DNA of 64,000 nt, taken from Ranitomeya imitator (lineage: Eukaryota). Position numbers and translations under genes: made by a program. The notes beneath the pieces are model-generated. The model was not told where the DNA came from. It made no database searches and saw only the letters and a list, made by a program, of their open reading frames with translations. Shown here piece after piece: positions 3,944 through 48,801 of the stretch (position 1 is the stretch's first letter; every line of letters starts with the position of its first letter). The DNA lies in contig NW_027193546.1 of the NCBI RefSeq assembly GCF_032444005.1, positions 558,001 through 622,000 on the forward strand, read 5' to 3'.

Positions 3944-4256
3944 CTTACACTGTAAAAAGAATCCAGATTAGGCTCTAGATCAACTCCACCACAAATGGCT
4001 CCTGTTACCTGAGAAACGAGAGTAATGAACTAATAAACGAGACCCCAGAATGCCGAGATCTGTGCAGCAAGGAGTTAAATAAGAAGTCCCTGAATACACA
4101 TCAACTCGCTGAGCAATGCCCAGATTATTCCTGAGATTTTCTCACCATCTCCCTCGTCACCAGGCGCAGAGCCCCGGGCGGAGCGAGCAGACACCTCGGG
4201 GAGACGGGAGAGGACACCGGAGCAGTGTGGGTGGCTCTTATAGTGAGGGTGTGGGT

Positions 4257-4272
4257 GGCTCTTAGAAGAGCC
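4257..4272 (-). terminator. H2B histone 3' stem-loop
   Basis: Minus strand AAA-GGCTCTTCTAAGAGCC-ACCCA. Copies at 36299-36314 and 60319-60334. Confidence 0.93.
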
Positions 4273-5459: not shown

Positions 5460-5590
5460 TGCGGCTCTTAGGAGGAGGATGTGGGGGCTCTTAGAAGAGC
5501 CTTTGAGTGTGTGGACAGATGTGGAGGAGCGGAGTTTACAGTCCTGGCACAGCAGACTAGCCGCTTCCTGGATCTACGAGGAAACGGCCA
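5460..5590 (-). pseudogene. Decayed H2B 3' fragment with intact stem-loop and downstream element
   Basis: Stem-loop GGCTCTTCTAAGAGCC at 5486-5501, then TAAGAGCCGC. Upstream TCC TCG TAG ATC CAG GAA GCG GCT AGT CTG CTG TGCCAGGA aligns by eye to H2B SREIQTAVRLLLPG. Shares GAGGAGCGGAG with the H2B 3' UTR. Confidence 0.6.
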
Positions 5591-8000: not shown

Positions 8001-8517
8001 TGTAACATAGTAACATAGTTAGTAAGGCCGAAAAAATACATTTGTCCTTCCAGTTCAGCCTATATTCCATCATAATAAATCCCCAGATCTACGTCCTTCT
8101 ACAGAACCTAATAATTGTATGATACAATATTGTTCTGCTCCAGGAAGACATCCAGGCCTCTCTTGAACCCCTCGACTGAGTTCGCCATCACCACCTCCTC
8201 AGGCAAGCAATTCCAGATTCTCACTGCCCTAACAGTAAAGAATCCTCTTCTATGTTGGTGGAAAAACCTTCTCTCTTCCAGACGCAAAGAATGCCCCCTT
8301 GTGCCCGTCACCTTCCTTGGTATAAACAGATCCTCAGCGAGATATTTGTATTGTCCCCTTATATACTTATACATGGTTATTAGATCGCCCCGTCTTTTTT
8401 CTAGACTAAATAATCCTAATTTCGCTAACCTATCTGGGTATTGTAGTTCTCCCATTCCCTTTATTAATTTTGTTGGCCTCCTTTGTACTCTCTCTAGTTC
8501 CATTATATCCTTCCTGT
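8001..8517 (-). mobile_element. CR1 LINE 3' fragment
   Basis: ELERVQRRPTKLIKG...TRGHSLRLEERRF...GFFTVRAVRIWNCLPEEVV is the CR1 RT C-terminus. Tail TAACTATGTTACTATGT. Confidence 0.9.
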
Positions 8518-8939
8518 GGATGTGATACCCCCAGAGCGTCCCAACCTCAGCGTAATGCAATGATAGACATTTGTTCATTTTCTGATGAAGAACTTCCATA
8601 AATGGAGATTTGGAAGGACGAAAGAAGCAAGTGAAATTAGAAGAGATTTCCCATCATTTAATCACCAGATGATGGTACTTCATTTATGCCGTTACCTCAT
8701 GTACCAATTACAACCCAGAAAGACATTTTATGCATTTTGTTTTATATAAAATATCATGCTTTAATGCAAAATTACAGGAACCTGCTCATAATTGTAAAGT
8801 ACAAATTAGTTTGTTGGTGTTTTTTTTTAATTCATTGCTTTAATGTAAAAACTGTACAGGCAGCAAGAGGGTTAAACACCAGTGTAACTGAAAAATAATC
8901 CTTACTACATCGCCCTCTATAGTGCCAGAGGCATTTACC

Positions 8940-9340: not shown

Positions 9341-10097
9341 GACGCGTATCCGGGGGAGATTGCTAGTAGAAATTTTGTAATTAGCTCCTATCTCCTCCCT
9401 TTCGTCTGATTGGTTGAGCACAGAACGGTTGGAGATTTTGAATTTTCCACTTATTGTGCTCTTCTTTTCCCGCTTCTCTATTCTTCTCATCTCAGCGTCG
9501 CTTAGATCTGTTGGTTATTTTGATTTTTACTTCCGTTGTAGTTTCGGTTGTTATTTTCCAGCTTGTTATAAAGTAGAATAAAAAATACATTTTAAGGACA
9601 CTGATCTACAGATAACTCATCTGATCCCCGGCAGTCACTCATCATTACACGTGGTGCCCGACTGGTGGCCATTACCGGTCACTGCAGAGCAGGGAGCTGT
9701 ATGTAACCAGACCCCCGGCGGCACCAGCCACAGATAAGATGAGAAAACTCAAATATATGATAATTACAACCTAAAGCCGCAAGACTGCAGAGGCGGCACT
9801 AGGACCCCATTTACGTCTGCGCTGTACAGAAACCGCGCCTCCACCACCAAAGACCCGGGCTGTGCACAGCGCACACTTTACCCTGTCCTTATAAAACGTC
9901 AGTCATGTAATTGATGTCGCACTTTTGGACTTGGTGAGAATAAAGGATGCGCGGAGCGGTAACTGGAATATCGCGGATCACCTACAATATCGGACACAGC
10001 AGCCGGCTATTACCTTTCCTGACCGCGCTCCGTATATGGAGAATACGCGCAGAAGAGAAACCGTTCAGGACTCGGCTCATTTGTGGGAGGATTTGGT

Positions 10098-10113
10098 GGC
10101 TCTGAAAAGAGCC
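10098..10113 (-). terminator. H3 histone 3' stem-loop
   Basis: Minus strand AAA-GGCTCTTTTCAGAGCC-ACCAA. Copy at 42127-42142. Confidence 0.95.
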
Positions 10114-10142
10114 TTTGTGTTGTGGTCGCAGCCGGGGCAGAT

Positions 10143-10790
<648 letters not shown>

Positions 10791-10961: not shown

Positions 10962-13900
10962 GATCATACAGCTCTGCGGGGAGGAGGTGGTGGCACTGAT
11001 CATACAGCTCTGCGGGGGAGAAGGTGGTGGCACTGATCATACAGCTCTGCGGGGTGGAGGTGATTTCTCTGATCATACAGCTCTGCAGGGAGGAGTAGGT
11101 GGTGGCACTGATGATACAGCTCTGCGGGGAGGAGGTGGTGGCACTGATCATACAGCTCTGCGGGGAGGAGGAGGTGGCACTGATCATACAGCTCTGCGGG
11201 GAGGAGGTGGTGGCACTGATCATACAGCTCTGCGGGGAGGAGGTGGTGGCACTGATCATACAGCTCTGCGGGGAGGAGGTGGTGGCACTGATCATACAGC
11301 TCTGCGGGGAGGAGGTGGTGGCACTGATCATACAGCTCTGCGGGGAGGAGGTGGTGGCACTGATCGTACAGCTCTGCGGGGAGGAGGTGGTGGCACTGAT
11401 CATACAGCTCTGCAGGGAGGAGGTGGTGGCACTGATCATACAGCTCTGCGGGGAGAAGGTGTTGGCACTGATCATACAGCTCTCCGGGGAGGAGGTGATT
11501 TCTCTGATCATACAGCTCTGCAGGGAGGAGGAGGTTATGGCTCTAATCATACAGGTCTGAGGGGAGTAGGTGGTGGCTCTGATCATACAGCTCTGCGGGG
11601 AGAGGGTGGTGGCACTGATCATACAGCTCTGCGGGGAGGAGGTGATGGCTCTGATCCTACAGCTCTGCGGGGAGAATGTGGTGGCTCTGATCATACAGCT
11701 CTGCAGGGAGGAGGTGGTGGCACTGATCATACAGCTCTGCGGGGAGGAGGTGGTGGCACTGATCATACAGCTCTGCGGGGAGGAGGTGGTGGCACTGATC
11801 ATACAGCTCTGCGGGGAGGAGGTGGTGGCACTGATCATACAGCTCTGCGGAGAGGAGGTGATTTCTCTGATCATACAGCTCTGCAGGGAGGAGGTGGTGG
11901 CTCTGATCATACAGCTCTGCGGGGAGGAGGTGGTGGCTCTGATCATACAGCTCTGCGGGGAGGAGGTGGTGGTACTGATCATACAGCTGTGCGGGGAGGA
12001 GGTGATTTCTCTGATCATACAGCTCTGCAGGGAGGAGGTGGTGGCTCTGATCATACAGCTCTGCGGGGAGGAGGTGGTGGCTCTGATCATACAGCTCTGC
12101 GGGGAGGAGGAGGTGGCACTGATCATACAGCTCTGCGGGGAGGAGGTGGTGGCACTGATCATACAGCTCTGCGGGGAGGAGGTGGTGGCACTGATCATAC
12201 AGCTCTGCGGGGAGGAGGTGGTGGCACTGATCATACAGCTCTGCGGGGAGGAGGAGGTGGCTCTGATCATACAGCTCTGCGGGGAGGAGGAGGTGGCACT
12301 GATCATACAGCTCTGCGGGGAGGAGGTGGTGGCACTGATCATACAGCTCTGCGGGGAGGAGGTGGTGGCTCTGATCATACAGCTCTGCGGGGTGGAGGTG
12401 ATTTCTCTGATCATACAGCTCTGCGGGGTGGAGGTGGTGGCACTGATTATACAGCTCTGCGGGGAGGAAGTGGTGGCTCTGATCATACAGCTCTGCGGGG
12501 GAGAAGGTGGTGGCACTGATCATACAGCTCTGCGGGGTGGAGGTGATTTCTCTGATCATACAGCTCTGCAGGGAGGAGTAGGTGGTGGCACTGATGATAC
12601 AGCTCTGCGGGGAGGAGGTGGTGGCACTGATCATACAGCTCTGCGGGGTGGAGGTGATTTCTCTGATCATACAGCTCTGCGGGGAGGAGGAGGTGGCACT
12701 GATCATACAGCTCTGCGGGGAGGAGGTGGTGGCACTGATCATACAGCTCTGCGGGGAGGAGGTGGTGGCACTGATCATACAGCTCTGCGGGGAGGAGGTG
12801 GTGGCTCTGATCATGCTGCTCTGCGGGGAGGAGGTGGTGGTACTGATCATACAGCTGTGCGGGGAGGAGGTGATTTCTCTGATCATACAGCTCTGCAGGG
12901 AGGAGTAGGTGGTGGCACTGATGATACAGCTCTGCGGGGAGGAGGTGGTGGCACTGATCATACAGCTCTGCGGGGTGGAGGTGATTTCTCTGATCATACA
13001 GCTCTGCAGGGAGGAGTAGGTGGTGGCACTGATGATACAGCTCTGCGGGGAGGAGGTGGTGGCACTGATCATACAGCTCTGCGGGGTGGAGGTGATTTCT
13101 CTGATCATACAGCTCTGCGGGGAGGAGGAGGTGGCACTGATCATACAGCTCTGCGGGGAGGAGGTGGTGGCACTGATCATACAGCTCTGCGGGGAGGAGG
13201 TGGTGGCTCTGATCATGCTGCTCTGCGGGGAGGAGGTGGTGGTACTGATCATACAGCTGTGCGGGGAGGAGGTGATTTCTCTGATCATACAGCTCTGCAG
13301 GGAGGAGGTGGTGGCTCTGATCATACAGCTCTGCGGGGAGGAGGTGATGGCACTGATCATACAGCTCTGCGGGGAGGAGGTGGTGGCACTGATGATACAG
13401 CTCTGCGGGGAGGAGGTGGTGGCTCTGATCATACAGCTCTGCGGGGTGGAGGTGATTTCTCTGATCATACAGCTCTGCGGGGTGGAGGTGGTGGCACTGA
13501 TTATACAGCTCTGCGGGGAGGAAGTGGTGGCTCTGATCATACAGCTCTGCGGGGGAGAAGGTGGTGGCACTGATCATACAGCTCTGCGGGGTGGAGGTGA
13601 TTTCTCTGATCATACAGCTCTGCAGGGAGGAGTAGGTGGTGGCACTGATGATACAGCTCTGCGGGGAGGAGGTGGTGGCACTGATCATACAGCTCTGCGG
13701 GGTGGAGGTGATTTCTCTGATCATACAGCTCTGCGGGGAGGAGGAGGTGGCACTGATCATACAGCTCTGCGGGGAGGAGGTGGTGGCACTGATCATACAG
13801 CTCTGCGGGGAGGAGGTGGTGGCACTGATCATACAGCTCTGCGGGGTGGAGGTGATTTCTCTGATCATACAGCTCTGCAGGGAGGAGTAGGTGGTGGCAC

Positions 13901-16900
13901 TGATGATACAGCTCTGCGGGGAGGAGGTGGTGGCACTGATCATACAGCTCTGCGGGGTGGAGGTGATTTCTCTGATCATACAGCTCTGCGGGGAGGAGGA
14001 GGTGGCACTGATCATACAGCTCTGCGGGGAGGAGGTGGTGGCACTGATCATACAGCTCTGCGGGGAGGAGGTGGTGGCTCTGATCATGCTGCTCTGCGGG
14101 GAGGAGGTGGTGGTACTGATCATACAGCTGTGCGGGGAGGAGGTGATTTCTCTGATCATACAGCTCTGCAGGGAGGAGGTGGTGGCTCTGATCATACAGC
14201 TCTGCGGGGAGGAGGTGATGGCACTGATCATACAGCTCTGCGGGGAGGAGGTGGTGGCACTGATGATACAGCTCTGCGGGGAGGAGGTGGTGGCTCTGAT
14301 CATACAGCTCTGCGGGGTGGAGGTGATTTCTCTGATCATACAGCTCTGCAGGGAGGAGTAGGTGGTGGCACTGATGATACAGCTCTGCGGGGAGGAGGTG
14401 GCGGCACTGATCATACAGCTCTGCGGGGTGGAGGTGATTTCTCTGATCATACAGCTCTGCGGGGAGGAGGAGGTGGCACTGATCATACAGCTCTGCGGGG
14501 AGGAGGTGGTGGCACTGATCATACAGCTCTGCGGGGAGGAGGTGGTGGCTCTGATCATGCTGCTCTGCGGGGAGGAGGTGGTGGTACTGATCATACAGCT
14601 GTGCGGGGAGGAGGTGATTTCTCTGATCATACAGCTCTGCAGGGAGGAGGTGGTGGCTCTGATCATACAGCTCTGCGGGGAGGAGGTGATGGCACTGATC
14701 ATACAGCTCTGCGGGGAGGAGGTGGTGGCACTGATGATACAGCTCTGCGGGGAGGAGGTGGTGGCTCTGATCATACAGCTCTGCGGGGTGGAGGTGATTT
14801 CTCTGATCATACAGCTCTGCGGGGTGGAGGTGGTGGCACTGATTATACAGCTCTGCGGGGAGGAAGTGGTGGCTCTGATCATACAGCTCTGCGGGGGAGA
14901 AGGTGGTGGCACTGATCATACAGCTCTGCGGGGTGGAGGTGATTTCTCTGATCATACAGCTCTGCAGGGAGGAGTAGGTGGTGGCACTGATGATACAGCT
15001 CTGCGGGGAGGAGGTGGTGGCACTGATCATACAGCTCTGCGGGGTGGAGGTGATTTCTCTGATCATACAGCTCTGAGGGGAGGAGGAGGTGGCACTGATC
15101 ATACAGCTCTGCGGGGAGGAGGTGGTGGCACTGAGCATACAGCTCTGCGGGGAGGAGGTGGTGGCACTGATCATACAGCTCTGCGGGGAGGAGGTGCTGG
15201 CACTGATTATACAGCTCTGCGGGGAGAGGGTGGTGGCTCTGATCATACAGCTCTGCGGGGAGGAGGTGGTGGCTCTGATCATACAGCTCTGCGGGGTGGA
15301 GGTGATTTCTCTGATCATACAGCTCTGCGGGGTGGAGGTGGTGGCACTGATTATACAGCTCTGCGGGGAGGAAGTGGTGGCTCTGATCATACAGCTCTGC
15401 GGGGGAGAAGGTGGTGGCACTGATCATACAGCTCTGCGGGGTGGAGGTGGTGGCACTGATCATACAGCTCTGCGGGGAGGAGGTGATTTCTCTGATCATA
15501 CAGCTCTGCAGGGAGGAGTAGGTGGTGGCACTGATGATACAGCTCTGCGGGGAGGAGGTGGTGGCACTGATCATACAGCTCTGCGGGGTGGAGGTGATTT
15601 CTCTGATCATACAGCTCTGCAGGGAGGAGTAGGTGGTGGCACTGATGATACAGCTCTGCGGGGAGGAGGTGGTGGCACTGATCATACAGCTCTGCGGGGA
15701 GGAGGTGGTGGCACTGATCATACAGCTCTGCGGGGAGGAGGAGGTGGCACTGATCATACAGCTCTGCGGGGAGGAGGAGGTGGCACTGATCATACAGCTC
15801 TGCAGGGAGGAGGTGGTGGCACTGATCATACAGCTCTGCGGGGAGGAGGTGGTGGCACTGATCATACAACTCTGCGGGGAGGAGGTGGTGGCACTGATCA
15901 TACAGCTCTGCGGGGAGGAGGTGGTGGCACTGATCATACAGCTCTGCGGGGAGGAGGAGGTGGCTCTGATCATACAGCTCTGCGGGGAGGAGGAGGTGGC
16001 ACTGATCATACAGCTCTGCGGGGAGGAGGTGGTGGCACTGATCATACAGCTCTGCGGGGAGGAGGTGGTGGCACTGATCATACAGCTCTGAGGGGAGGAG
16101 GAGGTGGCACTGATCATACAGCTCTGCGGGGAGGAGGTGGTGGCACTGATCATACAGCTCTGCGGGGAGGAGGTGGTGGCACTGATCATACAGCTCTGCG
16201 GGGAGGAGGAGGTGGCACTGATCATACAGCTCTGCGGGGAGGAGGTGGTGGCACTGATCATACAGCTCTGCGGGGAGGAGGTGGTGGCACTGATCATACA
16301 GCTCTGCGGGGAGGAGGTGGTGGCACTGATCATACAGCTCTGCGGGGAGGAGGTGGTGGCACTGATCGTACAGCTCTGCGGGGAGGAGGTGGTGGCACTG
16401 ATCATACAGCTCTGCAGGGAGGAGGTGGTGGCACTGATCATACAGCTCTGCGGGGAGAAGGTGTTGGCACTGATCATACAGCTCTCCGGGGAGGAGGTGA
16501 TTTCTCTGATCATACAGCTCTGCAGGGAGGAGGAGGTTATGGCTCTGATCATACAGGTCTGAGGGGAGTAGGTGGTGGCTCTGATCATACAGCTCTGCGG
16601 GGAGAGGGTGGTGGCACTGATCATACAGCTCTGCGGGGAGGAGGTGATGGCCCTGATCCTACAGCTCTGCGGGGAGAATGTGGTGGTACTGATCATACGG
16701 CTCTCCGGGGAGGAGGTGATTTCTCTGATCATACAGCTCTGCAGGGAGGAGGTGGTGGCTCTGATCATACAGCTCTGCGGAGAGGAGGTGGTGGCTCTGA
16801 TCATGCAGCTCTGCGGGGAGGAGGTGGTGGCACTGATCATACAGCTGTGCGGGGAGGAGGTGGTGGCACTGATCATACAGCTCTGCGGGGAGGAGGTGGT

Positions 16901-19900
16901 GGTACTGATCATACAGCTGTGCGGGGAGGAGGTGATTTCTCTGATCATACAGCTCTGCAGGGAGGAGGTGGTGGTACTGATCATACAGCTGTGCGGGGAG
17001 GAGGTGATTTCTCTGATCATACAGCTCTGCAGGGAGGAGGTGGTGGCACTGATCATACAGCTCTGCGGGGAGGAGGTGGTGGCACTGATCATACAGCTCT
17101 GCGGGGAGGAGGTGGTGGCACTGATCATACAGCTCTGCGGGGGAGAAGGTGGTGGCACTGATCATACAGCTCTGCGGGGTGGAGGTGATTTCTCTGATCA
17201 TACAGCTCTGCAGGGAGGAGTAGGTGGTGGCACTGATGATACAGCTCTGCGGGGAGGAGGTGGTGGCACTGATCATACAGCTCTGCGGGATGGAGATGAT
17301 TTCTCTGATCATACAGCTCTGCGGGGAGGAGGAGGTGGCACTGATCATACAGCTCTGCGGGGAGGAGGTGGTGGCACTGATCATACAGCTCTGCGGGGAG
17401 GAGGTGGTGGCTCTGATCATACAGCTCTGCGGGGGAGAAGGTGGTGGCACTGATCATACAGCTCTGCGGGGTGGAGGTGATTTCTCTGATCATACAGCTC
17501 TGCAGGGAGGAGTAGGTGGTGGCACTGATGATACAGCTCTGCGGGGAGGAGGTGGTGGCACTGATCATACAGCTCTGCGGGGTGGAGGTGATTTCTCTGA
17601 TCATACAGCTCTGCAGGGAGGAGTAGGTGGTGGCACTGATGATACAGCTCTGCGGGGAGGAGGTGGTGGCACTGATCATACAGCTCTGCGGGGAGGAGGT
17701 GGTGGCTCTGATCATACAGCTCTGCGGGGAGGAGGTGGTGGCTCTGATCATGCAGCTCTGAGGGGAGGAGGTGGTGGCACTGATCATACAGCTGTGCGGG
17801 GAGGAGGTGGTGGCACTGATCATACAGCTCTGCGGGGAGGAGGTGGTGGCTCTGATCATACAGCTCTGCAGGGAGGAGGTGGTGGCTCTGATCATACACC
17901 TCTGCGGGGAGGAGGAGGTGGCACTGATCATACAGCTCTGCGGGGAGGAGGTGGTGGCACTGATCATACAGCTCTGCGGGGAGGAGGTGGTGGCACTGAT
18001 CGTACAGCTCTGCGGGGAGGAGGTGGTGGCACTGATCATACAGCTCTGCAGGGAGGAGGTGGTGGCACTGATCATACAGCTCTGCGGGGAGAAGGTGTTG
18101 GCACTGATCATACAGCTCTCCGGGGAGGAGGTGATTTCTCTGATCATACAGCTCTGCAGGGAGGAGGAGGTTATGGCTCTGATCATACAGGTCTGAGGGG
18201 AGTAGGTGGTGGCTCTGATCATACAGCTCTGCGGGGAGAGGGTGGTGGCACTGATTATACAGCTCTTCGGGGAGGAGGTGATGGCTCTGATCCTACAGCT
18301 CTGCGGGGAGAATGTGGTGGCTCTGATCATACAGCTCTGCGGGGAGGAGGTGGTGGCACTGATCATACAGCTGTGCGGGGAGGAGGTGATTTCTCTGATC
18401 ATACAGCTCTGCAGGGAGGAGGTGGTGGCTCTGATCATACAGCTCTGCGGGGAGGAGGTGGTGGCACTGATCATACAGCTCTGCGGGGGAGAAGGTGGTG
18501 GCACTGATCATACAGCTCTGCGGGGAGGAGGAGGTGGCACTGATCATACAGCTCTGCGGGGAGGAGGTGGTGGCACTGATCATACAGCTCTGCGGGGAGG
18601 AAGTGGTGGCACTGATCATACAGCTCTGCGGGGAGGAGGTGGTGGCACTGATCGTACAGCTCTGCGGGGAGGAGGTGGTGGCACTGATCATACAGCTCTG
18701 CAGGGAGGAGGTGGTGGCACTGATCATACAGCTCTGCGGGGAGGAGGTGGTGGTACTGATCATACAGCTCTCCGGGGAGGAGGTGATTTCTCTGATCATA
18801 CAGCTCTGCAGGGAGGAGGAGGTTATGGCTCTGATCATACAGGTCTGAGGGGAGTAGGTGGTGGCACTGATCATACAGCTCTGCGGGGAGGAGGTGATGG
18901 CACTGATCATACAGCTCTGCGGGGAGGAGGTGGTGGCACTGATCATACAGCTCTGCGGGGAGGAGGTGGTGGCACTGATCATACAGCTCTGCGGGGAGGA
19001 GGTGGTGGTACTGATCATACAGCTGTGCGGGGAGGAGGTGATTTCTCTGATCATACAGCTCTGCAGGGAGGAGGTGGTGGTACTGATCATACAGCTGTGC
19101 GGGGAGGAGGTGATTTCTCTGATCATACAGCTCTGCAGGGAGGAGGTGGTGACACTGATCATACAGCTCTGCGGGGAGGAGGTGGTGGCACTGATCATAC
19201 AGCTCTGCGGGGAGGAGTTGGTGGCACTGATCATACAGCTCTGCGGGGAGGAGGTGGTGGCACTGATCATACAGCTCTGCGGGGAGGAGGTGATTTCTCT
19301 GATCATACAGCTCTGCAGGGAGGAGGTGGTGGCTCTGATCATACAGCTCTGCGGGGAGGAGGTGGTGGCTCTGATCATACAGCTCTGCGGGGAGGAGGTG
19401 GTGGTACTGATCATACAGCTGTGCGGGGAGGAGGTGATTTCTCTGATCATACAGCTCTGCGGGGAGGAGGTGGTGGCTCTGATCATACAGCTCTGCGGGG
19501 AGGAGGTGGTGGCTCTGATCATACAGCTCTGCGGGGTGGAGGTGATTTCTCTGATCATACAGCTCTGCGGGGTGGAGGTGGTGGCACTGATTATACAGCT
19601 CTGCGGGGAGGAAGTGGTGGCTCTGATCATACAGCTCTGCGGGGGAGAAGGTGGTGGCACTGATCATACAGCTCTGCGGGGTGGAGGTGATTTCTCTGAT
19701 CATACAGCTCTGCAGGGAGGAGTAGGTGGTGGCACTGATGATACAGCTCTGCGGGGAGGAGGTGGTGGCACTGATCATACAGCTCTGCGGGGTGGAGGTG
19801 ATTTCTCTGATCATACAGCTCTGCAGGGAGGAGTAGGTGGTGGCACTGATGATACAGCTCTGCGGGGAGGAGGTGGTGGCACTGATCATACAGCTCTGCG

Positions 19901-22900
19901 GGGAGGAGGTGGTGGCTCTGATCATACAGCTCTGCGGGGAGGAGGTGATTTCTCTGATCATACAGCTCTGCAGGGAGGAGGTGGTGGCTCTGATCATACA
20001 TCTCTGCGGGGAGGAGGTGGTGGCACTGATCATACAGCTCTGCGGGGAGGAGGTGATGGCACTGATCATACAGCTCTGCGGGGAGGAGGAGGTGGCTCTG
20101 ATCATACAGCTCTGCGGGGAGGAGGAGGTGGCACTGATCATACAGCTCTGCGGGGAGGAGGTGGTGGCACTGATCATACAGCTCTGCGGGGAGGAGGTGG
20201 TGGCACTGATCATACAGCTCTGCGGGGAGGAGTTGGTGGCACTGATTATACAGCTCTGCGGGGAGAGGGTGGTGGCTCTGATCATACAGCTCTGCGGGGA
20301 GGAGGTGGTGGCTCTGATCATACAGCTCTGCGGGGTGGAGGTGATTTCTCTGATCATACAGCTCTGCGGGGTGGAGGCACTGATTATACAGCTCTGCGGG
20401 GAGGAAGTGGTGGCTCTGATCATACAGCTCTGCGGGGGAGAAGGTGGTGGCACTGATCATACAGCTCTGCGGGGTGGAGGTGATTTCTCTGATCATACAG
20501 CTCTGCAGGGAGGAGTAGGTGGTGGCACTGATGATATAGCTCTGCGGGGAGGAGGTGGTGGCACTGATCATACAGCTCTGCGGGGTGGAGGTGATTTCTC
20601 TGATCATACAGCTCTGCAGGGAGGAGTAGGTGGTGGCACTGATGATACAGCTCTGCGGGGAGGAGGTGGTGGCACTGATCATACAGCTCTGCGGGGAGGA
20701 GGTGGTGGCTCTGATCATACAGCTCTGCGGGGAGGAGGTGGTGGCTCTGATCATGCAGCTCTGCGGGGAGGAGGTGGTGGCACTGATCATACAGCTGTGC
20801 GGGGAGGAGGTGGTGGCACTGATCATACAGCTCTGCGGGGAGGAGGTGGTGGCTCTGATCATACAGCTCTGCGGGGAGGAGGTGGTGGTACTGATCATAC
20901 AGCTGTGCGGGGAGGAGGTGATTTCTCTGATCATACAGCTCTGCAGGGAGGAGGTGGTGGCTCTGATCATACAGCTCTGCGGGGAGGAGGAGGTGGCACT
21001 GATCATACAGCTCTGCGGGGAGGAGGTGGTGGCACTGATCATACAGCTCTGCAAGGAGGAGGTGGTGGCACTGATCATACAGCTCTGCGGGGAGGAGGTG
21101 GTGGCACTGATCATACAGCTCTGCGGGGAGGAGGAGGTGGCACTGATCATACAGCTCTGCGGGGAGGAGGTGGTGGCACTGATCATACAGCTCTGCGGGG
21201 AGGAGGTGGTGGCACTGATCATACAGCTCTGCGGGGAGGAGGAGGTGGCACTGATCATACAGCTCTGCGGGGAGGAGGTGGTGGCACTGATCATACAGCT
21301 CTGCGGGGAGGAGGTGGTGGCAATGATCATACAGCTCTGCGGGGAGGAGGTGGTGGCACTGATCGTACAGCTCTGCGGGGAGGAGGTGGTGGCACTGATC
21401 ATACAGCTCTGCAGGGAGGAGGTGGTGGCACTGATCATACAGCTCTGCGGGGAGAAGGTGTTGGCACTGATCATACAGCTCTCCGGGGAGGAGGTGATTT
21501 CTCTGATCATACAGCTCTGCAGGGAGGAGGAGGTTATGGCTCTGATCATACAGGTCTGAGGGGAGTAGGTGGTGGCTCTGATCATACAGCTCTGCGGGGA
21601 GAGGGTGGTGGCACTGATCATACAGCTCTGCGGGGAGGAGGTGATGGCTCTGATCCTACAGCTCTGCGGGGAGAATGTGGTGGCTCTGATCATACAGCTC
21701 TGCGGGGAGAAGGTGGTGGCACTGATCATACGGCTCTCCGGGGAGGAGGTGATTTCTCTGATCATACAGCTCTGCGGGGAGGAGGTGGTGGCTCTGATCA
21801 TACAGCTCTGCAGGGAGGAGGTGGTGGCTCTGATCATACAGCTCTGCGGAGAGGAGGTGGTGGCTCTGATCATGCAGCTCTGCGGGGAGGAGGTGGTGGC
21901 ACTGATCATACAGCTCTGCGGGGAGGAGGTGGTGGCACTGATTATACAGCTCTGCGGGGAGGAGGTGGTGGCACTGATTATACAGCTCTGCGGGGAGGAG
22001 GTGGTGGCACTGATTATACAGCTCTGCGGGGAGAGGGTGGTGGCTCTGATCATACAGCTCTGCGGGGAGGAGGTGGTGGCTCTGATCATACAGCTCTGCG
22101 GGGTGGAGGTGATTTCTCTGATCATACAGCTCTGCGGGGTGGAGGTGGTGGCACTGATTATACAGCTCTGCGGGGAGGAAGTGGTGGCTCTGATCATACA
22201 GCTCTGCGGGGGAGAAGGTGGTGGCACTGATCATACAGCTCTGCGGGGTGGAGGTGATTTCTCTGATCATACAGCTCTGCAGGGAGGAGTAGGTGGTGGC
22301 ACTGATGATACAGCTCTGCGGGGAGGAGGTGGTGGCACTGATCATACAGCTCTGCGGGGAGGAGGTGGTGGCTCTGATCATACAGCTCTGCGGGGAGGAG
22401 GTGGTGGCTCTGATCATGCAGCTCTGCGGGGAGGAGTTGGTGGCACTGATCATACAGCTGTGCGGGGAGGAGGTGGTGGCACTGATCATACAGCTCTGCG
22501 GGTAGGAGGTGGTGGCTCTGATCATACAGCTCTGCGGGGAGGAGGTGGTGGCTCTGATCATACAGCTCTGCGGGGAGGAGGTGGTGGTACTGATCATACA
22601 GCTGTGCGGGGAGGAGGTGATTTCTCTGATCATACAGCTCTGCAGGGAAGAGGTGGTGGCTCTGATCATACAGCTCTGCGGGGAGGAGGAGGTGGCACTG
22701 ATCATACAGCTCTGCGGGGAGGAGGTGGTGGCACTGATCATACAGCTCTGCGGGGAGGAGGTGGTGGCACTGATCATACAGCTCTGCGGGGAGGAGGTGG
22801 TGGCACTGATCATACAGCTCTGCGGGGAGGAGGAGGTGGCACTGATCATACAGCTCTGCGGGGAGGAGGTGGTGGCACTGATCATACAGCTCTGCGGGGA

Positions 22901-24103
22901 GGAGGTGATTTCTCTGATCATACAGCTCTGCGGGGAGGAGGTGGTGGCTCTGATCATACAGCTCTGCGGGGAGGAGGTGGTGGTACTGATCATACAGCTG
23001 TGCGGGGAGGAGGTGATTTCTCTGATCATACAGCTCTGCAGGGAAGAGGTGGTGGCTCTGATCATACAGCTCTGCGGGGAGGAGGAGGTGGCACTGATCA
23101 TACAGCTCTGCGGGGAGGAGGTGGTGGCACTGATCATACAGCTCTGCGGGGAGGAGGTGGTGGCACTGATCATACAGCTCTGCGGGGAGGAGGTGGTGGC
23201 ACTGATCATACAGCTCTGCGGGGAGGAGGAGGTGGCACTGATCATACAGCTCTGCGGGGAGGAGGTGGTGGCACTGATCATACAGCTCTGCGGGGAGGAG
23301 GAGGTGGCACTGATCATACAGCTCTGCGGGGAGGAGGAGGTGGCACTGATCATACAGCTCTGCGGGGAGGAGGTGGTGGCACTGATCATACAGCTCTGCG
23401 GGGAGGAGGTGATTTCTCTGATCATACAGCTCTGCAGGGAGGAGGTGGTGGTACTGATCATACAGCTGTGCGGGGAGGAGGTGATTTCTCTGATCATACA
23501 GCTCTGCAGGGAGGAGGTGGTGGCACTGATCATACAGCTCTGCGGGGAGGAGGTGGTGGCACTGATCATACAGCTCTGCGGGGAGGAGGTGGTGGCTCTG
23601 ATCATACAGCTCTGCGGGGAGGAGGAGGTGGCACTGATCATACAGCTCTGCGGGGAGGAGATGGTGGCTCTGATCATACAGCTCTGCGGGGAGGAGGTGG
23701 TGGCTCTGATCATACAGCTCTGCGGGGAGGAGGAGGTGGCACTGATCATACAGCTCTGCGGGAAGGAGGTGGTGGCACTGATGATACAGCTCTGCGGGGA
23801 GGAAGTGATGGCACTGATCATACAGCTCTGCGGGGAGGAGATGGTGGCTCTGATCATACAGCTCTGTGGGGAGGAGGTGGTGGCTCTGATCATACAGCTC
23901 TGCGGGGAGGAAGTGATGGCACTGATCATACAGCTCTGCGGGGAGGAGGTGGTGGCACTGACGATACAGCTCTGCGGGGAGGAAGTGGTGGCACTGATCA
24001 TACAGCTCTGCGGGGAGGAGGTGGTGGCACTGATCATACAGCTCTGCGGGGAGGAGGTGGTGGCACTGATCATACAGCTCTGCGGGGAGGAGGTGGTGGC
24101 TCT
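10962..24103. repeat. 36-bp minisatellite (~365 copies) with higher-order structure, derived from the H1 3' processing signal
   Basis: Consensus GGGGAGGAGGTGGTGGC(A/T)CTGATCATACAGCTCTGC with 37- and 39-bp variants. The last repeat merges into the H1 stem-loop. Copy number estimated as length/36. Confidence 0.97.
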
Positions 24104-24113
24104 TATAAGAGCC
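24098..24113 (-). terminator. H1 histone 3' stem-loop
   Basis: Minus strand AAA-GGCTCTTATAAGAGCC-ACCAC, then CAGAGCTGTA (HDE) 15 nt downstream. Copy at 48119-48134. Confidence 0.95.
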
Positions 24114-24141: not shown

Positions 24142-24780
24142 TTATTTCTTAGCCGCGGGCTTCTTGGCTTTCGCAGCCTTCTTAGCCGGACTCTTGGCGG
24201 GTTTGGCCGCCTTCTTAGCCGGACTCTTCGTCACCTTCTTGGGCTTGGGAGCGGCTTTCGGCTTCTTGGGGCTCTTGGCCGCTTTCTTGGCCGCTGCGGG
24301 CTTCTTGGCCTTTTTCGGGCTCTTCTTGGCCGCAGTCGGAGCCTTCTTGGGCTTCTTCGGAGATTTGGCGGCTTTCTTGGCAGCAGCGGGTTTCTTAGGT
24401 TTGGCCGCAGCTGCTGGCTTCGTCTTGGCCACTTTGTCCTTCGTCTCCTGCTTCTTGTTCAGCTTGAAGGACCCGGAGGCGCCGCTGCCTTTCACCTGGA
24501 GGAGGGCGCCCTTGGTGACCAGAGCCTTGACGGCCAGCTTCAGGCGGCTGTTGTTCTTCTCTACATCGTATCCTCCAGCAGACAGAGCCTTCTTCAGGGC
24601 GGCCAGAGACACCCCGCTGCGCTCCTTGGAGGCGGACACGGCTTTCACGATCAGCTCGGAGACGCTGGGGCCGGAGGGTTTATTGCTCTTCTTGGCAGCA
24701 GATTTCTTCGGCTGCTTCTTGGATTTGGCGGCCGGTTCTGCGGGAGGGGGAGCGGCGGCTGGCGCGGTCTCTGCCATCAT
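24142..24780 (-). CDS. H1: Linker histone H1 (somatic type)
   Basis: MMAETAPAA..., globular domain [27 protein letters not shown]...[12 protein letters not shown], and a K/A/P-rich tail. The start may be the second ATG (24777). Confidence 0.97.
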
Positions 24781-24990: not shown

Positions 24991-25781
24991 TGCCCGGGAT
25001 AAAAGCCCTTTACCGGCTAACACCGGACAGCAGAGCGCGATTCCTCCGTCGCCTCCCCTTCTCCAACATCTCCACCGGCCATTTGTAGCCGTCACTAGCA
25101 GAGATGCCGGGAAAGAGCGGAGAGGAAATCCCGGGATCATCGCCGCCGTCCTCCCGATCTGCACATCACTGTGTATCCGGGGAGATAAATCTGCTGCGGG
25201 AGCTCGTTCCTCCTATTCCCGGCTCCTGTCACCATCACAGGGATCTTTACTCCTATGTCTATCGCACAGGAAGCTGATTGTACGATGTGGGGACGAGCTG
25301 GAGCTGCTGACAACCCAGAAGGGTAACACAGGCGACGGCCTCCGCTGACTGCCACCTCCCTGACCTGTGGTGTCACTGTACCCCGTATGTGCATAGGATT
25401 GGGGGGACACGTGTTCCACATCAGTAGATGATCCACATCGGTGGCTGATTGCAATCACCTGCCTGATATCGTGTCTTACCCAGTGTGAAGCTGTGACCGC
25501 TGCGGCCTGTCATGGTGCGAAGAGCTCTGATGAGGCGACAGCTGCACACTGCGACTCCCCAACCAAACACATAAACATCTCCGGGGAGAAAACTGAAATA
25601 TTAATGGATTTATGTGACCCCCACTATTGTGTAAAAGGGGAATATTGGGAGAAAAGCGGAGACACAAAATCCAGCGTCTACACAGAGAACACAGCTGTAC
25701 ATAGTATATATAGTGCACAACATCACATCTGCACAGCCCAGATCAGCAGTGTAATAAGTGTCACTGATACTAGAGGAGAGG

Positions 25782-25989
25782 GTACAGTATATACAGCAGA
25801 GTGTACAGTATATACAGCAGAGTACACAGTATATAGAGCAGAGTGTACAGTATATACAGCAGTGTGCACAGTATATAGAGCCAGTGTGTACAGTACATAC
25901 AGCAGTGTGTACAGTATATAGAGCAGTGTGTAAAGTATATACAGCAGTGTGTACAATTTATAGACCAGAGTGTACAGTATATAGAGCAG
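25782..25989. repeat. 21-bp minisatellite (~10 copies)
   Basis: Unit GTACAGTATATACAGCAG(A/T)GT. Copy at ~49803-50010. Confidence 0.85.
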
Positions 25990-26366
25990 TCTCCCCTCTC
26001 TTCTTCTTTCTCTCTCTCTCCCTCTTTCTTAATCTCTATTTCTCTCTCCTCTCTTTCATTATTTCCTTCTCTCCTTTCTCTCTTCGCTCTCCTCTCTTTC
26101 TTTCTCTCTTCTTTTTTCTCTAAATCTTTCTCTCACTCTTACTCTTTCTCCCTTTCTATTTCTCTCTCTCCCTCTCTTTCCCTTGCTTTCTCTTTTTCTT
26201 ACTTTATATCTATCTCTCTCCTTCTCTCTTTCTTTATCTCTCTTCTCTCTACTTCTCTCTCTCTCTCTTTATGTCTCTTTGTCTCTCTCTTTCTCCCTTT
26301 CTTTCTCTCTATCTCCTTCTTTCTCATTCTCTCTCTTTCACTTTATCTCTCTCTTTCTCTCTCTCA
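25990..26366. repeat. CT-rich low-complexity tract
   Basis: Almost pure pyrimidine on the plus strand, ending CTCTCAG. Related tracts at ~27545-27855, ~50011-50389 and ~51568-51878. Confidence 0.9.
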
Positions 26367-27369: not shown

Positions 27370-28170
27370 TGCGGAAGTTTATGGTACTTTTCTGCTGCAG
27401 ATTTCACTGCGGAAATGCCTTTTGTGCTGTAATTTGTAGTGGATCCAACCTGTGTTTTTCTTTTTTTACTACAGTGCCCTACTGGGACCCAGAAGCCCTC
27501 CTGGCCATCCAACTGCTACTCAGGCGCCAATTTCTAAGAAAGATTTATCTCCTCTCTTTCTTTCTCTTTCTCTAAATCTTTCTCTCACTCTTACCCTTTT
27601 CCCCTTTCTATTTCTCTCTCACCCTCTCTTTCTCTTGCTTTCTCTTTCTCTTTTTTCTCACTTTATCTCTATCTTTCTCTCTCCTTGTCTCTTTCTTCAT
27701 CTCTATTTCTTCTCTCTCTACTTATCNNNNNNNNNNNNNNNNNNNNNNNNNNNNNNNNNNNNNNNNNNNNNNNNNNNNNNNNNNNNNNNNNNNNNNNNNN
27801 NNNNNNNNNNNNNNNNNNNNNNNNNNNNNNNNNNNNNNNNNNNNNNNNNNNNNNNCCCAGGGAGAGATGATCAATCCTTCATGTCAGCAGTGCACCTCTC
27901 CAAAATGAGGCAGATGTACTAGATTTTCCAGGCACCGCCATCTGTACGTGCGGTGCTGCTGTAATCCCTGTCATCATCCTCGTTTTTCCTCTCCACGTTT
28001 CCATATCCAGCCAAGTGATCGCTGGGCCCAGTATTCTCATCAGCATTGCCGATACTTCGAGCTATAGCTAAGGAGAAGGCACAAGTGATGATAACCCGCC
28101 TCTATGTGCCCTCAAGTGTCTCCGCTGTGGTGCGGGATGATATGCTATGGAAGGTTAATAATCAATAATT

Positions 28171-37501: not shown

Positions 37502-37632
37502 TGCGGCTCTTAGGAGGAGGATGTGGGGGCTCTTAGAAGAGCCTTTGAGTGTGTGGACAGATGTGGAGGAGCGGAGTTTACAGTCCTGGCACAGCAGACT
37601 AGCCGCTTCCTGGATCTACGAGGAAACGGCCA
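37502..37632 (-). pseudogene. Decayed H2B 3' fragment with stem-loop, unit 2 copy
   Basis: Matches 5460-5590. Confidence 0.6.
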
Positions 37633-42171: not shown

Positions 42172-42756
<585 letters not shown>

Positions 42757-42988
42757 TTATTCCCGCCCAGTAACCCCGCCCCCTGAAGTCCCCGCCTCTT
42801 CCGTGATGCGTCTGTCCTCAGATCACTCATTTGCCGCTGCTGGAGCAGCTGATGTATCTGCGTTGAAATGTCCCCGTGTATAGCGCTGTACAGTGCAGCT
42901 CCCGCATTATCGTCAGATCACACCAACCCCCCATCCTGAGACTGCGCCCAGCATCAGTTATATTAAAAACATTACAAGTAGGAAAACT

Positions 42989-45900
42989 GATCATACAGCT
43001 CTGCGGGGAGGAGGTGGTGGCACTGATCATACAGCTCTGCGGGGGAGAAGGTGGTGGCACTGATCATACAGCTCTGCGGGGTGGAGGTGATTTCTCTGAT
43101 CATACAGCTCTGCAGGGAGGAGTAGGTGGTGGCACTGATGATACAGCTCTGCGGGGAGGAGGTGGTGGCACTGATCATACAGCTCTGCGGGGAGGAGGAG
43201 GTGGCACTGATCATACAGCTCTGCGGGGAGGAGGTGGTGGCACTGATCATACAGCTCTGCGGGGAGGAGGTGGTGGCACTGATCATACAGCTCTGCGGGG
43301 AGGAGGTGGTGGCACTGATCGTACAGCTCTGCGGGGAGGAGGTGGTGGCACTGATCATACAGCTCTGCAGGGAGGAGGTGGTGGCACTGATCATACAGCT
43401 CTGCGGGGAGAAGGTGTTGGCACTGATCATACAGCTCTCCGGGGAGGAGGTGATTTCTCTGATCATACAGCTCTGCAGGGAGGAGGAGGTTATGGCTCTG
43501 ATCATACAGGTCTGAGGGGAGTAGGTGGTGGCTCTGATCATACAGCTCTGCGGGGAGAGGGTGGTGGCACTGATCATACAGCTCTGCGGGGAGGAGGTGA
43601 TGGCTCTGATCCTACAGCTCTGCGGGGAGAATGTGGTGGCTCTGATCATACAGCTCTGCAGGGAGGAGGTGGTGGCACTGATCATACAGCTCTGCGGGGA
43701 GGAGGTGGTGGCACTGATCATACAGCTCTGCGGGGAGGAGGTGGTGGCACTGATCATACAGCTCTGCGGGGAGGAGGTGGTGGCACTGATCATACAGCTC
43801 TGCGGGGAGGAGGTGATTTCTCTGATCATACAGCTCTGCAGGGAGGAGGTGGTGGCTCTGATCATACAGCTCTGCGGGGAGGAGGTGGTGGCTCTGATCA
43901 TACAGCTCTGCGGGGAGGAGGTGGTGGTACTGATCATACAGCTGTGCGGGGAGGAGGTGATTTCTCTGATCATACAGCTCTGCAGGGAGGAGGTGGTGGC
44001 TCTGATCATACAGCTCTGCGGGGAGGAGGTGGTGGCTCTGATCATACAGCTCTGCGGGGAGGAGGAGGTGGCACTGATCATACAGCTCTGCGGGGAGGAG
44101 GTGGTGGCACTGATCATACAGCTCTGCGGGGAGGAGGTGGTGGCACTGATCATACAGCTCTGCGGGGAGGAGGTGGTGGCACTGATCATACAGCTCTGCG
44201 GGGAGGAGGAGCTGGCTCTGATCATACAGCTCTGCGGGGTGGAGGTGATTTCTCTGATCATACAGCTCTGCGGGGAGGAGGAGGTGGCACTGATCATACA
44301 GCTCTGCGGGGAGGAGGTGGTGGCACTGATCATACAGCTCTGCGGGGAGGAGGTGGTGGCTCTGATCATGCTGCTCTGCGGGGAGGAGGTGGTGGTACTG
44401 ATCATACAGCTGTGCGGGGAGGAGGTGATTTCTCTGATCATACAGCTCTGCAGGGAGGAGGTGGTGGCTCTGATCATACAGCTCTGCGGGGAGGAGGTGG
44501 TGGCACTGATCATACAGCTCTGCGGGGAGGAGGTGGTGGCACTGATCATACAGCTCTGCGGGGAGGAGGTGGTGGCACTGATTATACAGCTCTGCGGGGA
44601 GAGGGTGGTGGCTCTGATCATACAGCTCTGCGGGGAGGAGGTGGTGGCTCTGATCATACAGCTCTGCGGGGTGGAGGTGATTTCTCTGATCATACAGCTC
44701 TGCGGGGTGGAGGTGGTGGCACTGATTATACAGCTCTGCGGGGAGGAAGTGGTGGCTCTGATCATACAGCTCTGCGGGGGAGAAGGTGGTGGCACTGATC
44801 ATACAGCTCTGCGGGGTGGAGGTGATTTCTCTGATCATACAGCTCTGCAGGGAGGAGTAGGTGGTGGCACTGATGATACAGCTCTGCGGGGAGGAGGTGG
44901 TGGCACTGATCATACAGCTCTGCGGGGTGGAGGTGATTTCTCTGATCATACAGCTCTGCGGGGAGGAGGAGGTGGCACTGATCATACAGCTCTGCGGGGA
45001 GGAGGTGGTGGCACTGATCATACAGCTCTGCGGGGAGGAGGTGGTGGCACTGATCATACAGCTCTGCGGGGAGGAGGTGGTGGCACTGATTATACAGCTC
45101 TGCGGGGAGAGGGTGGTGGCTCTGGTCATACAGCTCTGCGGGGAGGAGGTGGTGGCTCTGATCATACAGCTCTGCGGGGTGGAGGTGATTTCTCTGATCA
45201 TACAGCTCTGCGGGGTGGAGGTGGTGGCACTGATTATACAGCTCTGCGGGGAGGAAGTGGTGGCTCTGATCATACAGCTCTGCGGGGGAGAAGGTGGTGG
45301 CACTGATCATACAGCTCTGCGGGGTGGAGGTGGTGGCACTGATCATACAGCTCTGCGGGGAGGAGGTGATTTCTCTGATCATACAGCTCTGCAGGGAGGA
45401 GTAGGTGGTGGCACTGATGATACAGCTCTGCGGGGAGGAGGTGGTGGCACTGATCATACAGCTCTGCGGGGTGGAGGTGATTTCTCTGATCATACAGCTC
45501 TGCAGGGAGGAGTAGGTGGTGGCACTGATGATACAGCTCTGCGGGGAGGAGGTGGTGGCACTGATCATACAGCTCTGCGGGGAGGAGGTGGTGGCACTGA
45601 TCATACAGCTCTGCGGGGAGGAGGAGGTGGCACTGATCATACAGCTCTGCGGGGAGGAGGTGGTGGCACTGATCATACAGCTCTGCAGGGAGGAGGTGGT
45701 GGCACTGATCATACAGCTCTGCGGGGAGAAGGTGTTGGCACTGATCATACAGCTCTCCGGGGAGGAGGTGATTTCTCTGATCATACAGCTCTGCAGGGAG
45801 GAGGAGGTTATGGCTCTGATCATACAGGTCTGAGGGGAGTAGGTGGTGGCTCTGATCATACAGCTCTGCGGGGAGAGGGTGGTGGCACTGATCATACAGC

Positions 45901-48124
45901 TCTGCGGGGAGGAGGTGATGGCTCTGATCCTACAACTCTGCGGGGAGAATGTGGTGGCTCTGATCATACAGCTCTGCGGGGAGAAGGTGGTGGCACTGAT
46001 CATACGGCTCTCCGGGGAGGAGGTGATTTCTCTGATCATACAGCTCTGCAGGGAGGAGGTGGTGGCTCTGATCATACAGCTCTGCGGAGAGGAGGTGGTG
46101 GCTCTGATCATGCAGCTCTGCGGGGAGGAGGTGGTGGCACTGATCATACAGCTCTGCGGGGAGGAGGTGGTGGTACTGATCATACAGCTCTGCGGGGAGG
46201 AGGTGGTGGCTCTGATCATACAGCTCTGCGGGGAGGAGGTGGTGGTACTGATCATACAGCTGTGCGGGGAGGAGGTGATTTCTCTGATCATACAGCTCTG
46301 CAGGGAGGAGGTGGTGTCTCTGATCATACAGCTCTGCGGGGAGGAGGTGGTGGCTCTGATCATACAGCTCTGCGGGGAGGAGGAGGTGGCACTGATCATA
46401 CAGCTCTGCGGGGAGGAGGTGGTGGTACTGATCATACAGCTGTGCGGGGAGGAGGTGATTTCTCTGATCATACAGCTCTGCAGGGAGGAGGTGGTGTCTC
46501 TGATCATACAGCTCTGCGGGGAGGAGGTGGTGGCTCTGATCATACAGCTCTGCGGGGAGGAGGAGGTGGCACTGATCATACAGCTCTGCGGGGAGGAGGT
46601 GGTGGCACTGATCATACAGCTCTGCGGGGAGGAGGAGGTGGCTCTGATCATACAGCTCTGCGGGGAGGAGGTGGTGGCACTGATCATACAGCTCTGCGGG
46701 GAGGAGGTGGTGGCACTGATCATACAGCTCTGCAGGGAGGAGGTGGTGGCACTGATCATACAGCTCTGCGGGGAGAAGGTGTTGGCACTGATCATACAGC
46801 TCTCCGGGGAGGAGGTGATTTCTCTGATCATACAGCTCTGCAGGGAGGAGGAGGTTATGGCTCTGATCATACAGGTCTGAGGGGAGTAGGTGGTGGCTCT
46901 GATCATACAGCTCTGCGGGGAGAGGGTGGTGGCACTGATCATACAGCTCTGCGGGGAGGAGGTGATGGCTCTGATCCTACAGCTCTGCGGGGAGAATGTG
47001 GTGGCTCTGATCATACAGCTCTGCGGGGAGAAGGTGGTGGCACTGATCATACGGCTCTCCGGGGAGGAGGTGATTTCTCTGATCATACAGCTCTGCAGGG
47101 AGGAGGTGGTGGCTCTGATCATACAGCTCTGCGGAGAGGAGGTGGTGGCTCTGATCATGCAGCTCTGCGGGGAGGAGGTGGTGGCACTGATCATACAGCT
47201 CTGCGGGGAGGAGGTGGTGGTACTGATCATACAGCTCTGCGGGGAGGAGGTGGTGGCTCTGATCATACAGCTCTGCGGGGAGGAGGTGGTGGTACTGATC
47301 ATACAGCTGTGCGGGGAGGAGGTGATTTCTCTGATCATACAGCTCTGCGGGGAGGAGGAGGTGGCACTGATCATACAGCTCTGCGGGGAGGAGGTGGTGG
47401 CACTGATCATACAGCTCTGCGGGGAGGAGGTGGTGGCACTGATCATACAGCTCTGCGGGGAGGAGGTGGTGGCACTGATCATACAGCTCTGCGGGGAGGA
47501 GGAGGTGGCACTGATCATACAGCTCTGCGGGGAGGAGGTGGTGGCACTGATCATACAGCTCTGCGGGGAGGAGGTGGTGGCACTGATCATACAGCTCTGC
47601 GGGGAGTGGGTGATGGCACTGATCATACAGCTCTGCGGGGAGGAGGTGGTGGCACTGATCATACAGCTCTGCGGGGAGGAGGTGGTGGCACTGATCATAC
47701 AGCTCTGCGGGGAGGAGGTGGTGGCACTGATCATACAGCTCTGCGGGGAGGAGGTGGTGGCACTGATCATACAGCTCTGCGGGGAGAGGGTGGTGGCACT
47801 GATCATACAGCTCTGCGGGGAGGAAGTGGTGGCACTGATCATACAGCTCTGCGGGGAGGAGGTAGTGGCACTGATCATACAGCTCTGCGGGGAGGAGGTG
47901 GTGGCACTGATCATACAGCTCTGCGGGGAGGAGGTGGTGGCACTGATCATACAGCTCTGCGGGGAGGAGTTGGTGGCACTGATCATACAGCTCTGCGGGG
48001 AGGAGGTGGTGGCACTGATCATACAGCTCTGCGGGGAGGAGGTGGTGGCACTGATCATACAGCTCTGCGGGGAGGAGGTAGTGGCACTGATCATACAGCT
48101 CTGCGGGGAGGAGGTGGTGGCTCT
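42989..48124. repeat. 36-bp H1-3'-signal minisatellite, unit 2 (~142 copies)
   Basis: Same consensus, variants and boundaries as 10962-24103, but 5.1 kb long. Confidence 0.97.
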
Positions 48125-48162
48125 TATAAGAGCCTTTGTGGTAACAGAACAGGGGCTGCAGC

Positions 48163-48801
48163 TTATTTCTTAGCCGCGGGCTTCTTGGCTTTCGCAGCCT
48201 TCTTAGCCGGACTCTTGGCGGGTTTGGCCGCCTTCTTAGCCGGACTCTTCGTCACCTTCTTGGGCTTGGGAGCGGCTTTCGGCTTCTTGGGGCTCTTGGC
48301 CGCTTTCTTGGCCGCTGCGGGCTTCTTGGCCTTTTTCGGGCTCTTCTTGGCCGCAGTCGGAGCCTTCTTGGGCTTCTTCGGAGATTTGGCGGCTTTCTTG
48401 GCAGCAGCGGGTTTCTTAGGTTTGGCCGCAGCTGCTGGCTTCGTCTTGGCCACTTTGTCCTTCGTCTCCTGCTTCTTGTTCAGCTTGAAGGACCCGGAGG
48501 CGCCGCTGCCTTTCACCTGGAGGAGGGCGCCCTTGGTGACCAGAGCCTTGACGGCCAGCTTCAGGCGGCTGTTGTTCTTCTCTACATCGTATCCTCCAGC
48601 AGACAGAGCCTTCTTCAGGGCGGCCAGAGACACCCCGCTGCGCTCCTTGGAGGCGGACACGGCTTTCACGATCAGCTCGGAGACGCTGGGGCCGGAGGGT
48701 TTATTGCTCTTCTTGGCAGCAGATTTCTTCGGCTGCTTCTTGGATTTGGCGGCCGGTTCTGCGGGAGGGGGAGCGGCGGCTGGCGCGGTCTCTGCCATCA
48801 T
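48163..48801 (-). CDS. H1: Linker histone H1
   Basis: Protein identical to 24142-24780. Confidence 0.97.

Follow-up and report, generated by a model that had tools for sequence, protein, structure and literature searches.

What has filled the space between two neighbouring histone genes of a poison frog with hundreds of copies of one short sequence, and do these copies take part in the processing of histone mRNA? The question is raised by a stretch of 64,000 nucleotides from the genome of Ranitomeya imitator (contig NW_027193546.1, positions 558,001 to 622,000; hereafter, the window), in which tandem arrays of a 36-bp unit lie directly downstream of histone H1 genes. The window contains two tandem histone cluster units and a fraction of a third. 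The order on the plus strand is H2B(-), H4(-), H3(-), array, H1(-), CT-rich tracts with BRAT1-like fragments, H4(+), H2A(-), and then the same again. According to the original prediction, the repeat was built from the H1 pre-mRNA 3' processing signal and constitutes a field of binding sites for U7 small nuclear RNA (snRNA). The origin of the unit from the H1 3' signal is clear. The array is a real satellite born from this signal. As for its role, we consider it likely that it evolves near-neutrally and carries the U7 site by inheritance.

In the array of the first cluster unit (array 1), Tandem Repeats Finder (TRF) detected a period of 36 with 362.9 copies, 90% matches and the plus-strand consensus GATCATACAGCTCTGCGGGGAGGAGGTGGTGGCACT. 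Wrap-around alignment to the consensus yielded 362 full units in array 1, in agreement with the approximately 365 tandem 36-mers initially proposed, and 142 in the array of the next cluster unit (array 2). At both junctions the H1 sense (minus) strand reads TAA..AAAGGCTCTTATAAGAGCC-ACCAC-CTCCTCCCCG-CAGAGCTGTA-TGATC-AGTGCC-ACCAC..., exactly as described before, with AG(A/T)GCC as the beginning of the unit. On this strand, the stop codon and a short 3' UTR precede the H1 stem-loop, within whose 3' arm both arrays begin. The anatomy of the junction and of the unit confirms that the repeat comprises the stem-loop 3' arm, the cleavage site and the histone downstream element (HDE) of H1. At its third position, the unit has T in 224 copies and A in 138 copies of array 1. 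ACCAC and the HDE are separated by a pyrimidine spacer, their distance is in every unit that of the native H1 signal, and the half of the unit that varies consists of a cryptic (NCC)n tract and a single CpG. The GC skew of the array is 0.36. Array 1 terminates 410 bp short of the ATG of the next H3 gene (about 400 bp had been estimated); this gene has the same orientation as H1, and its promoter lies inside these 410 bp.

Compared with the canonical histone 3' signal (RF00032), the first unit coincides with the real H1 signal and all units retain the spacing of ACCAC and HDE; from the second unit on, the 5' arm and the loop are missing and with them the SLBP site, which makes these units partial signals. 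Over the H1 signal and its array, the 16-nt stem-loop for SLBP is present only once, at the gene, and the fold of the junction RNA contained no further hairpin of this kind; the units carry the 3' arm AG(T/A)GCC alone. The H1 stem-loop of the first cluster unit matches RF00032 with 29.9 bits (E 7.6e-07), short of the gathering score of 34. Fold z-scores of -0.14 and -0.75 ruled out that the units hide a hairpin or other structured RNA, and the remaining Rfam matches are due to chance. The long open reading frames (ORFs) of the array, which reach 1316 aa, were also rejected as coding, since these ORFs exist because the 36-bp (12-codon) unit is free of stops on both strands.

The joints between units suggest how the array could have started. 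The commonest unit start is AGTGCC, while the stem-loop arm itself reads AGAGCC, and the far end of array 2 passes through TGATC-AGT-TTTCC into unique DNA. The simplest reading, taken from the sequence alone, is that a stretch of 36 bp just downstream of the H1 stem-loop would have been duplicated in tandem, beginning at GCC of the 3' arm and ending at AGT, 36 nt on. On this reading, AGT|GCC is the newly formed joint; it is also the most frequent beginning of a unit, and the far flank of array 2 is likewise preceded by AGT. The cleavage context and the HDE with its U7 complementarity would have passed into each unit, the stem-loop would not.

The possibility that the array is an artefact of assembly was rejected. 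Array 31-mers occur in DNA runs under no fewer than five species labels (organisms A, C, D, E and F), with a share of 0.20-0.53 of the sampled words, and the array depth of DNA contigs over the junction exceeds that of the H1 gene 200- to 900-fold. A contig from organism D, which has another species label, contains the stem-loop junction and also, as a loose end, unique sequence of the H3-side flank. The array is probably a lineage-specific satellite of dendrobatid poison frogs, with a unit of minisatellite type and arrays of kilobase scale. A gene model annotated in Ranitomeya variabilis as H1.01-like extends over 13.6 kb for a product of 240 aa, and it may be a prediction artefact that bridges an array of this kind.

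The arrays consist of 73 unit types, the commonest of which accounts for 105 of approximately 506 units. When the arrays are written as strings of unit types, multi-unit blocks recur (e.g. WXNSOPRKT and GECJMLC), and one block of ten units is shared by both arrays, with four occurrences in array 1 and three in array 2. Collinearity between the arrays is confined to their ends; their interior differs by block duplications or deletions. With its short head-to-tail unit, its variant units and these higher-order blocks, the repeat belongs to the minisatellites or satellites. It also has the unstable copy number of a satellite: the adjacent cluster units differ 2.5-fold (363 vs 142 copies), while their non-array DNA is 99.4-99.95% identical. 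The block pattern together with this gap in length suggests that the repeat has been turned over by unequal exchange. The array would thus have grown, and would keep changing, through unequal exchange and the duplication of blocks within the tandem histone clusters. In one copy from Phyllobates terribilis, H3 follows next after H1 in like orientation with a gap of only 1042 bp; as the non-array part of the H1-H3 gap in the window is about 450 bp, this copy has room for approximately 16 units at most. A large array is not needed for an H1-H3 pair.

The U7 site itself is well defined. The sequence AGAGCUGUA of the H1 signal and of the array unit forms a 9-nt Watson-Crick run with the 5' end of U7 snRNA. 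In line with the initial claim, this is the longest uninterrupted run among the histone 3' ends of the window, the others being 6 nt (H2A), 6 nt (H2B), 4 nt (H3) and 4 nt (H4). It begins 17 nt past the stem, and it is purine-rich, as is characteristic of an HDE. A match to the U7 gene was not found within the window, and the pairing was computed with mammalian and Xenopus U7. The human and mouse U7 start with (A/C)AGUGUUACAGCUCUUUUAG (PMC7026596), and the Xenopus laevis U7 primer AAGTGTTACAGCTC (PMC2064619) indicates that the anuran U7 shares at least the first 14 nt. The predicted energy of the 9-bp duplex is -14.0 kcal/mol, compared with -7.7 to -14.7 for other HDEs in the window and -16.9 for a mouse H2a substrate; by this estimate, the duplex would be an ordinary one among the HDEs of the window. 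In mouse extract, a reduction of the uninterrupted U7 duplex from 15 to 9 bp lowers cleavage to <5%, and SLBP-independent cleavage requires a strong duplex of about 15 bp (PMC7026596). As the units have no stem-loop and offer only a 9-bp duplex, efficient cleavage at each unit would not be expected from this established biochemistry.

These properties bear on the proposal that the array is a fail-safe field of processing and termination. In this case, H1 transcripts that have escaped cleavage would be bound by the U7 small nuclear ribonucleoprotein (snRNP) at the next HDEs and cut at ACCA|C, and RNA polymerase II would be released before the H3 promoter. The tandem orientation of H1 and H3 with the array between them and the native ACCAC-HDE spacing in each unit agree with such a field. 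However, the absence of the stem-loop from the units deprives them of help from SLBP, and a 9-bp duplex is poorly cleaved in mouse extract even with SLBP (PMC7026596). Moreover, a few units would suffice, which leaves 142-363 copies unexplained, and the H1-H3 pair of Phyllobates manages with 16 units at most. A fail-safe function, as envisaged originally, is thus unlikely.

Evidence on transcription came from RNA runs. Words of the H1 stretch are present in them at 37-47%, which matches its transcribed part, while the share of array words is 0-0.02 in the study with those H1 words and at most 0.20 in another study. One RNA run, X34, contains a 244-nt contig extending from 24269 to 24026, which takes in the last part of the H1 coding region together with the stem-loop and reaches 75 nt, or two units, into the array. 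Genomic DNA contamination as the source of this contig was rejected: the depth in X34 is zero upstream of 24750, over 1 kb upstream of H1, whereas the DNA runs cover this kilobase at an H1-like depth. H1 transcripts that are uncleaved at the H1 site exist, as a short read-through in one RNA library. The ratio of summed array depth to H1 depth is approximately 1-6 in X34 vs 200-900 in the DNA runs, so that, relative to its DNA copies, array RNA falls short of H1 by a factor of about 100 or more. The array depth in X34 equals the RNA of a few units for each H1 transcript, and this amount fits an ordinary pre-mRNA tail and termination zone. Of the proposed H1 read-through, the entry into at least the first two units was thus borne out; bulk array RNA is low in the libraries at hand.

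Both the read-through of at least 75 nt and the low level of array RNA relative to H1 are what early-stopping transcripts of a fail-safe field would give, but ordinary termination behind a histone gene predicts the early loss of RNA equally. On the reading of a near-neutral satellite, H1 transcription enters at least the first units in the same way as it enters the region behind any histone gene before termination, and the few extra HDEs on the nascent H1 RNA may bind the U7 snRNP weakly.

The RNA data are also relevant to a second proposed function, a multivalent scaffold or sponge. Here long array RNA, for instance on the lampbrush loops of oocytes, would gather U7 snRNP and nucleate histone locus bodies, or else titrate U7. 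Every H1 gene with an array is followed by hundreds of 9-nt U7 complements, and a precedent exists in the newt Notophthalmus, where satellite 1, with a unit of about 220 bp, is located between the histone gene clusters and is transcribed by read-through on lampbrush loops. A related case is that of newt satellite 2 (PMC2114352). In human, HDE-like motifs of LTR12 elements (from long terminal repeats, LTRs) and of long intergenic non-coding RNAs (lincRNAs) are real targets bound by U7 snRNA (PMC11417402). In the frog, the search for long satellite transcripts from histone promoters, as in the newt, gave one bridging contig with 75 nt of array and low bulk array RNA in non-oocyte libraries. The sites are many but the array RNA is low, and most RNA runs in which H1 mRNA is well represented contain next to no array words (share 0-0.20 over the studies). 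The ordinary 9-bp duplex and the lack of a stem-loop in the units likewise argue against the scaffold, as does the unconstrained size of the array (363 vs 142 copies). Furthermore, more than 90% of the nuclear U7 in Xenopus oocytes resides in Cajal bodies and is unseen on chromosome loops (PMC2064619), and overexpression of HDE-like lincRNAs did not result in U7 sponging in human cells (PMC11417402). We therefore regard a scaffold or sponge as very improbable.

The conservation of the HDE bears on the near-neutrality of the satellite. The HDE 9-mer is intact in 89% of the units of array 1 and in 90% of those of array 2. As variants have been amplified in blocks and the copies are therefore not independent, events instead of copies were counted, on a minimum spanning tree of unit types; 12 inferred events fell in the nine positions of the HDE core and 68 in the other 27. 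Several points weigh against near-neutrality. Among the 36 cyclic 9-nt windows, the HDE 9-mer is the best kept in array 1 and the second-best in array 2, and a raw binomial test of the events indicates an HDE deficit with P=0.02. The H1-proximal units, namely the first 17 of array 1 and the first 22 of array 2, all keep the 9-mer despite other private changes, as would also suit a fail-safe field. In addition, the RNA contigs tell of presence and not of level and carry neither strand nor 3'-end information, and among the RNA libraries at hand none is from oocytes and none is nascent.

The deficit of substitutions in the HDE, which the count per position had been meant to reveal, appears in the raw data but weakens after stratification by base: with shuffling within base classes, 12 HDE events were observed vs 17.3 expected (P=0.12). 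The sole C of the HDE core (position 27) has four inferred events, equal to the Cs elsewhere. The chance of unbroken 9-mer runs of 17 and 22 units is approximately 0.15 and 0.10, respectively, for arrays that are mutually non-independent. The excess conservation of the HDE is a consistent but weak signal, and mutation bias can explain it. One could speculate that in oocytes or cleavage-stage embryos the H1 read-through RNA serves as a co-transcriptional landing pad, which would concentrate U7 snRNP and provide back-up cleavage and termination before the H3 promoter, the weak HDE conservation being its trace; we find this quite unlikely.

Another explanation concerns the origin of the array and is compatible with a near-neutral satellite. 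The histone 3' end could be a mutational hot spot that provokes tandem duplication via a DNA hairpin of the stem-loop, via the asymmetry of a G-rich and a C-rich strand, or via breaks linked to termination. The boundary of the duplication within the stem-loop 3' arm and the GC skew of the array point in this direction. So does the H2B 3' end, which contains a perfect 16-nt direct repeat, TAAGAGCCACCCACAC, with a period of 24 nt and a start in its own stem-loop. However, these are just two cases from one genome, and the H2A, H3 and H4 ends in the window have no such repeats; a hot spot is conceivable, although we propose it only tentatively.

The H2B repeat is located at 4225-4264 (-), 36267-36306 and 60287-60326. 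Its first copy consists of the loop end, the 3' arm and the cleavage context, and its second copy sits at the place expected for the HDE; it looks like a two-copy seed of a like amplification.

The near-neutral satellite can be compared with several known systems. Hypervariable minisatellites with G/C strand asymmetry share with it the short GC-rich unit, the strand skew, the interspersed variants, the block duplications and the large differences in copy number between neighbours. Unlike in hypervariable minisatellites, the founder of the frog array is an identifiable functional RNA-processing signal, and there is one array per histone cluster unit. Newt satellite 1 is likewise a tandem repeat of amphibian histone clusters, positioned downstream of histone genes and reachable by read-through. 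To our knowledge, the newt unit does not derive from a processing signal, whereas the much shorter frog unit reproduces the H1 cleavage context and HDE; the two are likened by description, and read-through in the frog is short. Human LTR12 elements resemble the array in having repeated sites that match the U7 5' end in non-histone RNA, several per transcript (PMC11417402). The LTR12 motifs are 15 nt long with 0-2 mismatches, belong to retroviral LTRs and act on transcription via NF-Y (PMC11417402), whereas the frog array has a 9-nt match, was born as a satellite from a real histone HDE and is known from sequence.

The H4-to-H4 length of the histone repeat units in the window is 32,042 and 24,020 bp, and the difference between the two is almost wholly array length. 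Tandem histone units of 3.7-13 kb were reported in a 2026 survey of more than 250 species (PMC13525598). Histone repeat units can thus swell to 24-32 kb, well over this range. The words satellite and HDE are both absent from that survey (PMC13525598), and our literature searches found no account of arrays grown from a histone 3' signal; the H1-signal satellite has apparently not been described before. Satellites with a founder that can be named are rare. The frog array descends from a working RNA-processing signal and amounts to a natural construct that places hundreds of U7 sites after every H1 gene. If these sites are used, it offers a direct handle on the recruitment of U7 snRNP and on the end of transcription behind histone genes; if they are unused, it shows cleanly how a functional motif can be carried along by a neutral repeat.

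Table 1. Location of the arrays, H1 3' signals and adjoining histone genes in the window (all on the minus strand).
Feature	Position	Strand	Basis and remarks
Array 1: 36-bp unit AG(T/A)GCC-ACCAC-CTCCTCCCCG-CAGAGCTGTA-TGATC, 363 copies	10962..24100	-	TRF, unit parsing
Array 2: unit of array 1, 142 copies, next cluster unit	42986..48121	-	TRF
H1 3' stem-loop GGCTCTTATAAGAGCC, loop UAUA	24098..24113	-	RF00032, 29.9 bits; sole hairpin in the minimum free energy fold of the junction RNA
H1's own ACCAC (24093-24097), spacer and HDE core AGAGCTGTA (24073-24081)	24073..24097	-	Direct reading; also within the first array unit
H1 stem-loop, cluster unit 2	48119..48134	-	Pattern scan; junction identical to unit 1
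Histone H1 gene, cluster unit 1	24142..24780	-	ORF list; 212 aa; stop TAA 24142-24144; RNA contig over 24157-24803
Histone H3 gene beyond array 1	10143..10553	-	ORF list; RF00032 stem-loop at 10073-10118
Histone H1 gene, cluster unit 2	48163..48801	-	ORF list
Histone H3 gene downstream of array 2	42172..42582	-	ORF list; RF00032 at 42102-42147

The exact H1 protein of the window is recorded in assembly GCA_032444005.1. Its closest relative is the H1.01-like protein of Ranitomeya variabilis (96-97%), followed by a protein of Phyllobates terribilis (91%), which assigns the window to Ranitomeya. Long CT/GA-rich tracts are present upstream of H1 in every unit (25996-26365, 27559-27704, 50017-50388 and 51571-51877), and a 21-bp tandem repeat with 10 copies adjoins them at 25777-25989. 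Between H4 and H3, each unit contains an ORF of 163 aa (8108-8599 and 40136-40627, both on the minus strand), which resembles the C-terminal end of the reverse-transcriptase ORF of long interspersed nuclear elements of the CR1/L2 type. A histone-type stem-loop, GGCTCTTCTAAGAGCC, followed by the HDE-like CCTAAGAGCC, is found at 5486-5501 (-), 37528-37543 and 61548-61563, where the ORF list has no histone ORF upstream.

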